Shown here piece after piece: positions 10,073-15,878 of a DNA stretch of 64,000 bases. Under the pieces are notes generated by a model. That model was not told where the DNA came from. It made no database searches and was given only the letters and a program-made list of their open reading frames with translations. Where the stretch lies: contig CP075496.1 of the NCBI GenBank assembly GCA_021613535.1, positions 12,772,001 to 12,836,000 of the forward strand, in the 5' to 3' direction. The first letter of the stretch is position 1. Each line of letters begins with the position of its first letter. The translations under genes were made by a program, and so were the position numbers. Origin of the DNA: Adineta vaga. Taxonomy: Eukaryota > Animalia > Rotifera.

Positions 10073-11749
10073 ATGACTGACTATGTATCAGTTCGATCAA
10101 ATTGGTCATCTACTAATTCTAATTTACTTGAACGCGTTTGTGATGTGGATATTGAGGAGGACAATCAATCGACTGATATGGATAAACAAGAAAATGATGA
10201 TCTTAGGTTGGTTTATTTATGATTTTATTCAACTAGATCAGAAAAAGAAAAGTCATGTTTAAGTGTGTTATTTTTATGTCAATTATGTTGAACGTAGGTG
10301 TATGATGATTCTTTCATCTTATGACTTGCTTTTATTTACTTTGTAAAACTACTGTTGATTTTCTTTATTGAAAAAAAATCATCTATTGATAAAGCGAAGG
10401 CGAGATTTTCTCTCATTAATATCTAGAAAAACGACATCATCAAATGAGAATTTAACGAATATCACACTTCAATGCAATAATCAAACAGATACACGAGAAG
10501 ATCCGTTAATTATAATCCATGTTCTCCAACCGGATGAATATCAAATTGTTTCTATTCAACTTCTTTCAAGTGCAAAACATATCGAAGTAATGATCATCAT
10601 GAACTGCAAGTACAATAGTTTTTTTTTCCTTTTCAAATCTTTAGTTCTACGAACGTGAATATATTGGCAGTTGTCAAGGTTCACGAATAACTGAACTTGA
10701 TAGTCAATCAATATATGAAGCATCATTGGAATTTCATCAAGTATATGAAGAAATTACATTAAAAGTAACATCTCTTCGAATATTTTCCATTAATTAATTT
10801 ATTTGAATTAGTGTTTAAAACTTGCTGATATAACAGATTTGACAATCTATTGTATACAAATTACAATGAAGAAAATTCAATCGATTTCATCGAGAAATTT
10901 TCCATTCGATTTAAATCGTGTTCGTTCAATGATTGATGAAACACATTTATCATCGAATGCACGTCAATTTATGAATGACCTTCAACATATTCAAGAACAA
11001 CGTCGTACCAAGGAGAACTCTTCCTCACAATTGAATATCGGTTCATTGATGTCATTAATGACTGGTAAAAACAAAGTTCAATGAAAACTATCTCTTCTTA
11101 TTTTCTCTCGTTTATCAAGGAATGAAATCTTCATCGGTGAATACAAAGTATGTAATTACTATTACAAAATTTAATAAAAGATTAACTAAAAATAACATCT
11201 CTTTTGTTCTAATATCTATGACGTTAGTAGATTTAATATTCTTGTTTGCAAACATCTTTTTTTTTCAAGTCAACTAGTAACATTTTTGTCACTAATCGTA
11301 ATCATGTATGACTATTTTCATGTCATCAATCAAATTAATTGTACTTTTTGTTAGATATTAAAAGATTAACTAAACAAACATTTCTCTTGCATGTTTTTTT
11401 GTCTTTAAAAAGATTAGAAGAAGAAGAAAGAACCTTGTATTGACTTTCTTTCAATGAATTAAATTTCATTTCAATCAAATAAATGTGTTCTTAATAAGAA
11501 CTAGCAGTGCGACGTTTTACTATTTACTATAATTTGTTTCTTTCTTTCTTTGAATTTAGACAAGCATCGACTAGTTCATTTTCATCAATAGTTAATGATA
11601 TAAAATCTTCGTTGAATGAAAACATGAATAATGATAAAAGCAAAGAAAATCATCTTGAAATTCTCATTGACAAACGATTTGATGACCTTAAACAACATAT
11701 TGATCAACGTTTCGATCGTCTCGAAGCAATATTAACTAAAAAGAGTTGA
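10073..11749 (+). CDS. PAAT: PAAT / C10orf88-like protein
   Basis: Spliced product contains IVSIQLLSSAKHIEFYEREYIGSCQG, DLNRVRSMI..LSSNARQFM and C-terminal DKRFDDLKQHIDQRFDRL, matching recalled conserved blocks of C10orf88. Confidence 0.65.
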
Positions 11750-12088: not shown

Positions 12089-12603
12089 ATGTTCACTATT
12101 GCACTTTTCTCAGTTTACACTTTTGCATTGGTTATCAGTTCCTCAGCTGAAAATCCATCGAATGACAAGCAATATACAATCAAAGGTGTTGATACAACCT
12201 ATACACAGCATATATCGACTCATGGTAAGTCTGTTCGAGTTGAAAAGAAACGTACAAAGACTTGTTGATCTTTTCAGATCAATGCACAGTTGAAATAAAC
12301 GATCAAAATGAAAAGACTCAAATGCTCACTGAAGGTGAAATAATCAAAATCAAAAATAAATGGTTCAAAGTCGAAGATTGTCGATTAAATCGTGCATATG
12401 TTGCTCCATGTGGTTCGAAATTATTTTCTCAAATGCGTGATCTTGTTTGTTCCTATGTTGCAAATAATTCGAAAAAACCCAGTCGTCAACGTCGACAAAG
12501 CAATGATGATTTAATCAATCTAATGGATCGAACATATTATGGTTTATGTTGTCAAAGTGCTTGTACAATCTCGGAATTACTTCAATATTGTCCACCGAAA
12601 TAA
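12089..12603 (+). CDS. Insulin/relaxin-like peptide precursor 1 with N-terminal extra domain
   Basis: Exon 12089-12224, intron 12225-12277, exon 12278-12603. Signal peptide MFTIALFSVYTFALVISSSA, B chain CGSKLFSQMRDLVC, RQRR furin site, A chain CCQSACTISELLQYC (CC-x3-C-x8-C). Confidence 0.9.
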
Positions 12604-13207
12604 TTGCAACAGGCTTTGAAAAGAAAAAGAATTTTTTTCCTTGTATTCTTCTTCTACGTTCAGAAAATATATTTCATTGCATTTGATCTCGTATTCTTGT
12701 GTTGTTTTTGTTCTTCGTATATGTACAAAAAAAAAAGAAACTTAATATATATATATATTGAAAAAACAAAAAGTCTTTCATATCTTTAATTAATAAGAAT
12801 CAAGCAGAAGTGAAATAAAATCCTTAATATGAACGTAATAAATGTATTTCGGACGCGATTAAGAACATGGAAAGTTAATCTTGTCAGTTTGATCTATTTG
12901 AAATGGATTTTATCCATCTGTTACATTATTAGAAAAGTCATGATATATGAAGAGCTTTGATCTGACTTAACTATTTGCTTTTTGAATATATACACGGAAA
13001 TGCACAGCGATGTTGATATTTTCAACATAGATAACATACGAAATTCCTGTCATACACCGTGCGATTCTTTTTTCCCTAACTTTATATTGTCAATAATATA
13101 CGTAAGATCATTTTAAAAGAATAAATTCTTTTTTTTTCTATTTTTTTCTCTTCTTCCTAATGTTAATATTTCCCTTTTTTTTCGACAAATCAACTAACAT
13201 ATATATG

Positions 13208-13216
13208 TATATAAAT
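13208..13216 (+). promoter_or_regulatory. Putative TATA box of ILP2
   Basis: TATATAAAT upstream of an apparent non-coding first exon (donor GTAAGT at ~13310, acceptor TTCTAG at ~13403) preceding ATG 13454. Confidence 0.45.
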
Positions 13217-13453
13217 ACCTGAAGTTTTCTAAACATTCAAATAACAATATACCCTTTGCAGGCAAATTTAACACTGTGCTCCGAGAGCCCAAGCAACGCA
13301 ATATAATATGTAAGTCTTTTTTCTTTCTCTCTTGTTCTCTATCCTTCTCTCTTATTTTAATGATTATAATATATTAGAAAAACTATTTTACATTTATTTC
13401 TAGTGTGCTAGTTCACATTGTATTTGAATATCATTAATAAAGCAAGCATTATT

Positions 13454-14065
13454 ATGAACACTTATATCCCATTATGCTTTGTAGCACTGGTTGCTGTTAT
13501 CCAAAGTATGCCCACCATCGACGATGATTTGATCAATCATAATACTAGTCATTTCAAAAATATCAGTAGTAATTATGATGACAATTCGAATTCTTTCATC
13601 GAAAAATTTATTCAAGTTGAACAGCAACATGAAAGTAAAGTGTTACGGCATCTTCATCATCTTATTGATGGTAAAACATATCATATAAAAGCAGCCGGTG
13701 TTTCTTATCGACAACGTTTACGTGATTATCAATGTGTTGTCGAATATGATGGTAAATTTCTAACTGAAAATAGTGTTATACAACTTCGAAAGAAACTTTA
13801 TCGTGTGGAAAACTGTTTACTAGAACGAGTCTTTCATGCATGTGGTCCAAACTTATTATTAATGTTAAATGTTGTTTGTCGAGTTGTTGAGCAACAACAA
13901 ACAACAACACCAAGAACAATTAGTTATCGACAAACAGTGCCAACATCAAAAGCTTTTATTCATCGAATATCTCCACGAGCCAATAAAACTCCACGAGTAA
14001 TCACAGAATCCTGTTGTGAAAATCTATGTACAATCTCGGAATTAACGAGATATTGCCATCGATAA
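13454..14065 (+). CDS. Insulin/relaxin-like peptide precursor 2 with N-terminal extra domain
   Basis: Signal peptide MNTYIPLCFVALVAVIQS, B chain CGPNLLLMLNVVC (C-x11-C), A chain CCENLCTISELTRYC; single coding exon. Confidence 0.9.
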   Translation: MNTYIPLCFVALVAVIQSMPTIDDDLINHNTSHFKNISSNYDDNSNSFIEKFIQVEQQHESKVLRHLHHLIDGKTYHIKAAGVSYRQRLRDYQCVVEYDGKFLTENSVIQLRKKLYRVENCLLERVFHACGPNLLLMLNVVCRVVEQQQTTTPRTISYRQTVPTSKAFIHRISPRANKTPRVITESCCENLCTISELTRYCHR

Positions 14066-14073
14066 AGACAAAG

Positions 14074-14091
14074 ACACACACACACACACAC
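14074..14091. repeat. Short (CA)n microsatellite in ILP2 3' UTR
   Basis: acacaacacacacacaca directly visible. Confidence 0.7.
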
Positions 14092-15878
14092 TCATACATA
14101 TATATCTTTTGAACTAAGATGATTGTTGATCATTACATGTAACGCTTCGCTTAAAGGTCGCTGGGCGAATTGAATAAAAGAAGAAAAAAGAAAGAAACTA
14201 ACAAATATTGATTTAATAAAAATAATTGAAAACTATATAGAAAAAAATATCATAAAAATTTATAAATCAGTTCATTATTTTGTAAACATCGATCGAATGT
14301 CATGTATAGTTTAATGATGTTGATGATTAACTTTTATTTACTATTCATCATCAACAAAACTACAATTTATTTTTGTTAAGTATGTTGAATTTATTTAACT
14401 GAGGAACACTTTTCAACTATAACCTACTTGTTGTTGTCCAGTGAATTACTCAATGTTATTTTCAACCCCAACAATATATTAATTGATTATCGAAAGTGTT
14501 GAATGACTGTGTCGATGTGTGACTTGTTTAACAATATGACTAGAATATATATTGATGATTCAAAAGTGAACGAAGAAAGTTCGATGATCATATCTTGAAG
14601 CATTTTAGGAATAGAGTCATATCCGGATTGATATTACATACGCATTATAATCTAATGATAATTAATTTGAAGTTTTATGAAAGACTTGTGGTTTGATGTA
14701 TATAATTTCTCTGACGTATTTTCTCTTTATTATATATATATATATATGAGACATAGCTTAAAGTTTTGCTTTGAATATTTATTACGTCGGTGCTGAAAAA
14801 ATATTCTTAATAAAGAAAATCGAATTTCACTTTTAGGATAAATGTTTACTGCTCTATTTTTTATATGTTATTCATTGATTATTATCAACATAAAACGAAT
14901 AATTTAGAAATTTTCTCACAAATTAGAATGAGAAACGAATATTATCGTTACTTTTGTTTTTATTAATAAAACAAAGATATATTTAATAGAATTCTATAAA
15001 ATTTGCAAATCCACCTACCTAAAACTATTTCTTTTTCTTTCATTTCACTCATCTATAGGGATTGGAACACTTTTCCTAATGATATTTGAATAATATGTTT
15101 TTTTAACTAAATTCAATTTTAGTACGATGTTATTTATGTTTTAAACTATATAGGTTATGAGAAATGAAGAGAAAGTACAATTCTAGAACAACTATATGTC
15201 ATTTTAGTCATGAGGCGATAATGAATGAAGAATATGCCCATGAAGATTGAGTTTACAATAGCGAGTAAATCATCGACTTGGAAACGGCTATGAGTAGATA
15301 TTTGATCATTAAATTTATGTAATCAATTGTGTGCTCAATTACACTATTATTACGTTAGATTAATATCAATTCAAAATGCATTGAATTAAGATATTATATA
15401 TGATATATTTCTTCTAAATAGAATATTGAAATTTGAGAATCAAACATCGTAATGACACGTTCTACTGGCTGATCTGTAAAAAATGTCTACAAAAGTTTTC
15501 TATTTTTTTTTTTATTGTTGTTAATTGTTTTTCTTCCAGCTCATCTCTCGTGCATTGTGAACATTTCTTAAGAAAAACAAACAGATAAATGAAGAAAGAA
15601 AACAAACCAGGAAAACAGTACAATAAACCCAAATGAATGCAAAACACATAGAAGATAGAAAGCAGATATACAGGAAGTGAAATGAGAGTGTGACAAAAGA
15701 CGAAGAAAGAAAATTCACAGCGATGCTTGTATTGATTTTTTATCTCAAAATGATCTTTGATCGCCAAAACGCAGAATAACAAAATAGGATAAGTTCAAAA
15801 AGTTGAATTAACCAAATGAAAGGAGAAAAAATACATCATTCAAGGGAAACACATGATTGTATTTGTTTGTTTGTTTTT

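Follow-up and report, generated by a model that had tools for sequence, protein, structure and literature searches.

The window analyzed here, a 64,000-nucleotide stretch of the Adineta vaga genome (contig CP075496.1, positions 12,772,001 to 12,836,000), lies on a 15.2-Mb chromosome and carries two insulin-family precursor genes in tandem, gene 1 at 12089-12603 and gene 2 at 13454-14065, as an initial annotation of the sequence had proposed. Gene 1 starts with the ATG at 12089 and has a single GT..AG intron between exon 1 and exon 2 (12278-12603); gene 2 is a single exon encoding 203 residues. The two exon pieces of gene 1, with an Asp at the junction, correspond to NCBI protein I4U23_021229 (P0188, 153 residues), and three database proteins named Adineta vaga (I4U23_021229, I4U23_000510 and I4U23_000511) are identical to genes described here. 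In both precursors the parts follow the order signal peptide, N-terminal block, B chain, connecting peptide and an A chain with the pattern CC-x3-C-x8-C; hydrophobic N-termini and KR, RR or K-x-x-R sites were recognized by inspection. The N-terminal block, referred to below as the module or N-domain, contains two cysteines in addition to the six of the insulin core.

Gene 2 scored 32.5 bits against the Pfam Insulin family (PF00049), above the gathering threshold of 23. Gene 1 was scored one exon at a time, and its exon 2 alone gave 15.3 bits, under the cut-off; this exon nevertheless aligned to residues 93-201 of gene 2 with 33% identity (E 1e-12) over a stretch spanning both extra cysteines and the B and A chains. 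The six core cysteines (C-x11-C in the B chain, CC-x3-C-x8-C in the A chain) are invariant in nine A. vaga paralogues and in 127 aligned family members. A B helix and two A helices are predicted by AlphaFold2, and the insulin part of the model superposes weakly on IGF1 and IGF2 (Z 3.0-3.8). For the nematode beta-type insulins (PF03488, Ins_beta) the score was 15.1 bits, below the gathering cut-off of 21.

The cysteine-loop module and its conservation

The module is real. A shared block of 55-60 residues had been described for the two genes, and while the sharing stands, the block is not a single unit: it is a composite of a Cys-loop of about 33-38 residues, present in all nine module-bearing insulin-like genes of the A. 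vaga genome, and an extension of about 24 residues that occurs in long forms only. The core loop reads Cys-x26-Cys-x-L-x-R (x28 or x31 in gene-1 types) and is located 5-6 residues ahead of the B-chain Cys-Gly. All nine paralogues share C-x26-31-C-x-L-x-R-[AV]-[YF]-x-x(-x)-C-G, and just before the B chain they hold, together with the two extra cysteines, invariant Glu, Lys, Glu, Leu and Arg residues. The extension, IDG-x3-I-K-x5-Y-x-Q-R, is confined to gene-1 types, gene-2 types and some Didymodactylos genes. Both window genes are long forms; gene 1 itself has lost the "IDG" start, and the extension is kept in the gene-1-type orthologues of Adineta and Rotaria. In five short genes of A. vaga the Cys-loop follows the signal peptide after about 8-12 residues. 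The intron of gene 1 interrupts the block one codon 5' of the first extra cysteine.

The two extra cysteines, aligned between the genes in the initial annotation, proved invariant or nearly so across the 127 family members. Of the 120 relatives that were fetched from 182 database matches, 119 keep exactly 26 residues between the two, the sole exception being truncated at its N-terminus. Among 32 gene-2 orthologues, mean pairwise identity was 0.76 for the N-domain, 0.97 for the B chain and 0.95 for the A chain, compared with 0.61 for the signal peptide and 0.45 for the connecting peptide, and the pro-region was lowest at 0.31. Between gene 1 and gene 2 the pro-regions and connecting peptides gave no alignment, in agreement with the first description. 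Within the module, the G-K-L-Y-K-V-E-D-C strand is conserved on both faces, which fits either a strand buried between module and core or a binding surface.

Separately, in 38 of 81 short forms (e.g. L003-L005, P0001-P0066) the first extra cysteine stands in an Asn-Cys-Thr/Ser triplet, a possible N-glycosylation sequon that contains the Cys itself; the triplet was found in no long form.

Table 1 Features of the two insulin-like genes, with positions in the window. pLDDT, predicted local distance difference test.
Feature	Position	Strand	Description
Gene 1, exon 1	12089..12224	+	Signal peptide (about residues 1-19), short linker, then first half of N-domain
Gene 1, N-domain first half KQYTIKGVDTTYTQHISTH	from about 12167	+	Within exon 1
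Gene 1, intron	12225..12277	+	GTAAGT...TTTCAG, 53 nucleotides, phase 1; read from sequence
Gene 1, Cys-loop core	12278..12393	+	First part of exon 2; (D)Q-C-x31-C-R-L-N-R, last residue the invariant Arg
Gene 1, B-chain region	12394..12459	+	AYVAPCG...C-SYV; Pfam Insulin match (15.3 bits) spans residues 39-104 of the exon-2 piece
Gene 1, connecting peptide	12460..12531	+	RQRR near B end; single Arg before TYYGL-CC
Gene 1, A chain and stop codon	12532..12603	+	CC-x3-C-x8-C
Gene 2, signal peptide	13454..13510	+	Residues 1-19, by inspection; AlphaFold2 helix at 4-17
Gene 2, variable pro-region	13511..13660	+	Residues 20-69, acidic and Asn-rich; K-x-x-R site at end; low pLDDT
Gene 2, N-domain	13661..13834	+	Residues 70-127; extension IDGKTYHIKAAGVSYRQRL and Cys-loop C94-x26-C121-L-L-E-R125
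Gene 2, B-chain region	13835..13891	+	HACGPNLLLMLNVVC..., residues 128-146; Pfam Insulin match spans 128-201; predicted helix 132-150
Gene 2, connecting peptide	13892..13996	+	Residues 147-181; K-T-P-R at end
Gene 2, A chain and stop codon	13997..14065	+	Residues 182-203 (VITESCC...C-HR)

The neighboring gene upstream of the pair (window 11507-11749) ends at 11749 and encodes a short, charged, helix-like C-terminus ending in DLKQHIDQRFDRLEAILTKKS. On the 5' side of gene 2, TATAAATA is found at 13210-13217, and a possible 94-nucleotide intron in the 5' untranslated region, read from the sequence only, would extend from GTAAGT at 13310 to a TTTCTAG ending at 13403, ahead of the ATG at 13454. An (AC)n microsatellite of about 20 nucleotides (14073-14092) lies directly 3' of the gene 2 stop codon.

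Paralogues, tandem pairs and distribution

A six-frame search of the 100.8-Mb, six-contig genome with gene 2 identified the nine module-bearing insulin-like genes: the window pair, a second tandem pair on chromosome C1, and five short genes (L003 to L007), all of which are single-exon. The N-domain alone, searched against the same genome, matched insulin paralogues only. An additional hit at C2:6949960 (L010, E 1.8), without the insulin cysteine pattern, was rejected as a chance match. The C1 pair (L008 followed by L002) has the same order and orientation as the window pair. When 22 kb of the window (2000-24000) was compared by tblastx with the 20 kb surrounding the C1 pair, nothing but the two insulin genes was shared, and the flanks showed no synteny. 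The NCBI model of L008 (C1:1891847-1895155, minus strand; P0180, 151 residues) uses a splice donor that removes the residues Q-R-[IV]-S-D-x kept in orthologues; the best-looking donor (AAG/GTGAGT, the slash marking the splice site) is out of phase, and a weaker in-phase donor 7 bases downstream would give a 49-nucleotide phase-1 intron.

Besides A. steineri and A. ricciae, five Rotaria species have gene-1-type orthologues. In A. steineri the orthologue contains a 53-nucleotide phase-1 intron at the identical position, and because a long-form insulin gene follows this orthologue 2.9 kb downstream in identical orientation, the tandem pair is older than the split of the two Adineta species; A. 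vaga has two copies of it. A maximum-likelihood tree (63 rows, 73 columns) recovered a gene-1 clade (support 100/96) and a gene-2/long-form clade (98/97) and gave no resolution of the backbone. A canonical insulin-like gene without the module is located at C4:3387493-3387897 on the minus strand (L011/L012). It is the orthologue of a module-less Rotaria sordida insulin (P0167), to which it is 63% identical in two matching pieces 39 nucleotides apart, and bdelloids therefore keep at least one ordinary six-cysteine insulin besides the module-bearing expansion. The module is thus present in nine of at least ten insulin-like genes of A. vaga.

A profile search of a word-indexed database yielded 182 relatives, the named ones all from Adineta or Rotaria and the remainder from metagenomes; some members carry the UniProt label "Insulin-like domain-containing protein". 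An exhaustive HMMER search used a profile of 131 positions, beginning in the N-domain and extending through the A chain, with 1.84 billion representative proteins as the target (E <= 0.001). It gave 53 matches, of which 38 form the family proper with at least 73 bits, followed by a gap down to 48 bits. Inspection of the tail, which covered the fetched matches (P0162 left out), revealed two more module carriers, the N-domain fragment P0156 and a divergent protein of Didymodactylos carnosus (P0164). Most other tail matches align with the B-to-A part only, starting at profile positions 48-59 or later and ending at about 130-131, and three cover only the C-terminal, A-chain end. The named tail matches without the module are insect, ostracod and fish insulins and one Rotaria sordida insulin; three unnamed assembly sequences also lack it. 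D. carnosus is a bdelloid as well and holds the most divergent module carriers, and several of its genes have extension and loop together. Outside the bdelloids (Adineta, Rotaria, Didymodactylos), no protein in this exhaustive search aligned to the module columns. Judged from these sequences, the module is restricted to bdelloid rotifers, and the lineage-specific class of two-domain insulins suggested at the outset occurs in all bdelloid genera sampled and nowhere else among the proteins searched, the insulins of other animals matching the B-to-A part.

Predicted structure and fold comparison

The structure of gene 2 was predicted with AlphaFold2 on the 127-row alignment. Its module is modeled as seven beta strands (residues 75-127; pLDDT 90-96 over 72-127), the last of which (122-127) holds the invariant Arg and stops three residues before the first B-chain cysteine. 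In the predicted insulin core the B helix covers residues 132-150 and the two A helices cover 183-189 and 194-200, and the pro-region and connecting peptide are of low confidence. For a short form (L004), five strands (residues 34-66; pLDDT 83-93) precede the same insulin core, and in both the long-form and the short-form predictions the last strand leads straight into the B helix. On these models the module is an all-beta, folded unit (pLDDT 83-96), in line with the beta-strand patterning first noticed in the residues. An independent model from the ESM Atlas, representing a Rotifera cluster, fits onto gene 2 residues 71-202 with 2.2 Å over 106 residues, so that two predictors agree on the placement of the module relative to the insulin core; the ESM Atlas feature search returned insulin clusters only, with scores below 0.8.

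No significant fold match for the module was obtained with Foldseek against the PDB (best E 0.15), and the best score of an exhaustive structural aligner (Z 4.4) is within the range common for unrelated chains. Weak look-alikes at Z 2-4 recurred among FHA domains, FnI fingers, VWC and mucin/VWF E-type modules. Likewise, 34 module sequences compared with Pfam hit no consistent family (best E 0.0075, in 3 members), and the module profile searched against PDB sequences gave E 0.06 at best, to an unrelated kinetochore protein. The module of this architecture, which the first reading of the sequence had not recognized, therefore has no match at a significant level in Pfam families, PDB sequences or known folds.

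Precursor processing, related peptides and possible function

Taken together, the tandem genes are probably members of a bdelloid-specific eight-cysteine insulin-like subfamily in which the module is most likely retained before the B chain, and sequence features and models point, with better than even confidence, to a mature hormone in which it stays attached. In such a precursor, the B chain would be preceded by a small all-beta module, itself located after the signal peptide or after a pro-region that can be removed. The two extra cysteines would close a core loop of 26 residues, and the module would pass as a beta strand directly into the B chain; in the long forms, both window genes included, two or three strands would be added N-terminal to this core. 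Module and B helix would together make up an enlarged B chain of the mature hormone, linked to the A chain through the three canonical insulin disulfides, and with eight cysteines a fourth disulfide would be expected inside the module. It may act through an insulin-receptor-type tyrosine kinase encoded in the genome, the module probably stabilizing the hormone or adding or altering a binding surface.

Retention is favored over cleavage because of the features of the junction between module and B chain, the continuity of the strand across it, and a conservation of the module close to that of the insulin core. The junction has no conserved dibasic site and no conserved basic residue at P2, P4 or P6; it carries a lone Arg, preceded by Cys at P5 and followed by Ala or Val at P1', and reads (with a slash at the junction) C-x-L-[HQ]-R/A-Y in short forms, C-L-L-E-R/V-F in gene-2 types and C-R-L-N-R/A-Y in Adineta gene-1 types. 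The connecting peptides are bounded by KR and RR runs in short forms, and in long forms the A chain is preceded by K-T-P-R or K-T-K-R. In long-form precursors read by eye, a K/R-x-x-R or RR site closes the pro-region, a few residues ahead of the N-domain.

Several points nevertheless weigh against retention or against the wider picture. The Arg before the B chain is invariant (127 of 127 aligned members), the Leu at P3 is conserved in at least 90%, and this Arg could be a monobasic processing site; in the gene-1 types of A. vaga and A. steineri the junction even reads R-L-N-R, a furin-like motif. The extent to which the module packs on the insulin core is drawn from two predictions, and the restriction to bdelloids from predicted proteomes, which are prone to missing small genes, with no search of monogonont, seisonid or acanthocephalan genomes. 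It is conceivable, though we consider it the less probable outcome, that cleavage at the invariant Arg (L-x-R before A/V-Y/F) removes the module as a pro-domain, with an ordinary six-cysteine, two-chain insulin as the mature hormone and the module serving as an intramolecular folding aid or released separately as a disulfide-looped peptide with its own activity. Such a cut would leave 4-5 residues ahead of the first B-chain cysteine, a normal length for invertebrate insulins, and nematode insulins shed an N-terminal F peptide, which counts in its favor as well. Most members, however, lack a basic residue at P2, P4 or P6, and both Cys at P5 and the Val at P1' of gene-2 types are disfavored at monobasic prohormone sites under Devi's rules. 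The basic P4 of the A. vaga gene-1 types is replaced by Gln (C-Q-L-N-R) in two of three aligned Rotaria orthologues, and the junction Arg belongs to a beta strand, predicted with confidence, that runs on to the B-chain cysteine. In addition, an R-K-K run is found inside the module in 53 of 53 long-form members counted, so basic pairs alone are no sign of cleavage here.

Two further explanations concern the origin of the block. A derivation from a known small disulfide-bonded beta domain (an FnI finger, a VWC or VWF E-type domain, or a dilp7-type F-domain), of which a copy was joined to an insulin gene and has diverged, appears improbable. The tPA finger, factor XII FnI, fibronectin FnI pairs, VWF TIL'E' and C4, and mucin E modules do recur as look-alikes (Z 2.0-3.9, root-mean-square deviation 1.6-4.7 Å over 34-48 residues), but all fold scores fall in the range common for unrelated chains, with a Foldseek E of at least 0.4 for these candidates. 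Moreover, FnI, VWC and VWF E-type domains have four or more cysteines and two disulfides, and the module has just two cysteines. The conserved N-terminal extension of the putative B chain of dilp7 orthologues, termed the F-domain (Veenstra 2021, PMC8286064), also counts in its favor; yet no protein from outside the bdelloids, dilp7-type ones included, aligned to the module columns, the N-module profile lacks a Pfam or PDB-sequence match, and the N-domain finds only insulin paralogues in the A. vaga genome. A chance resemblance or gene-prediction artefact could draw on the exon-1 piece of gene 1, whose alignment to gene 2 (residues 74-90) is weak by itself (E 0.044), although orthologues of both genes bridge this stretch in the alignment. 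The cysteine positions and spacing common to hundreds of orthologues and paralogues, the gene 1 intron conserved in A. steineri, and the tandem arrangement kept both on C1 and in that species amount to a family-wide conservation by which this explanation is effectively refuted.

The bdelloid precursors resemble insulin, IGF, relaxin (PF00049) and invertebrate insulin-like peptides in their signal peptide, B chain (C-G-x10-C), A chain (CC-x3-C-x8-C), connecting peptide bounded by basic sites and three predicted helices, which superpose on IGF1 and IGF2 only weakly. They differ in having ahead of the B chain, and continuous with it, a confidently predicted 33-58-residue beta module that holds two additional cysteines, as well as in lacking the typical phase-1 intron of the C-domain and the aromatic B24-B26-type segment after the last B-chain cysteine. 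Nematode F peptides are likewise located between signal peptide and B chain; they are short, poorly conserved and removed at basic sites, in contrast to the bdelloid module, which is strongly conserved, predicted to be folded and without a conserved dibasic boundary. Eight cysteines and four predicted disulfides are shared with octinsulins, some multinsulins, molluscan insulin-related peptides and nematode beta-type insulins, whose extra cysteines, placed inside the A and B chains or at their ends, connect the two chains. In the bdelloid family, both extra cysteines precede the B chain, and a disulfide between the two is expected. Part of the placement of extra cysteines in eight-cysteine insulin-related peptides is documented in PMC8286064, and the same source describes a phase-2 intron shared by dilp7 orthologues together with the C-domain phase-1 intron. 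Like the dilp7 F-domain, the module is a conserved N-terminal extension of the B chain with no obvious cleavage, but the profile search, in which no dilp7 sequence was aligned directly, detected no sequence similarity, and the module has a cysteine pair and is predicted to be all-beta. Furthermore, gene 2 and the five short genes are single-exon, the sole intron of gene 1 is phase 1 and inside the N-domain, and in contrast to the single conserved orthologue that is dilp7, the bdelloid genes form a lineage-specific expansion of nine.

An insulin-type receptor would be available, since the genome contains a gene with the L1-CR-L2-fn3-tyrosine-kinase organization (L020, C4:~8291500-8296000, minus strand), the exons of which match Recep_L, Furin-like, Recep_L, fn3 and tyrosine-kinase in this order. 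A second receptor L-domain locus lies at C1:4865416-4865676. The module had also been called basic, with matrix or heparan binding as a possible role. The net charge of the module amounts to +4 for gene 2 and 0 for gene 1, and averages about -0.4 in short forms (range -7 to +4) and about 0 across the family; the description as basic holds for gene 2 only. With the family not basic overall, heparan or matrix binding was rejected as a family property and offers no general explanation. More tentatively, the module might be a true second functional domain, either a receptor- or partner-binding element that alters signaling or a separately released disulfide-looped peptide. If the latter were true, one precursor would give rise to an insulin and a new bdelloid peptide hormone, and in either case a domain family would have been invented in bdelloid rotifers and fixed in nearly all their insulin genes.

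Module-bearing insulins appear to be undescribed so far. In the literature searched, the only report found on rotifer insulin-like peptides is a 2024 NP-HMMer preprint (10.1101/2024.07.20.604414), whose main text is silent on the module, and a paper on starfish relaxin merely included Rotaria socialis in a survey. Among published concepts, the dilp7 F-domain comes closest. The small fold of insulin is a subject of intensive study, and, as far as we found, natural insulin variants with a domain predicted to fold on the N-terminus of the B chain are also undescribed. The results correct the picture of rotifer insulin-like peptides. Since the module is present in nine of at least ten A. vaga genes and conserved between the bdelloid genera, the main insulin signaling of bdelloids probably runs through this architecture. 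Of relevance to comparative endocrinology and insulin structural biology, the family allows a concrete test of how folding, stability, receptor engagement or carrier binding respond to additional structure on the arm of the B chain, and hormone stability would be of particular interest in animals that survive desiccation.

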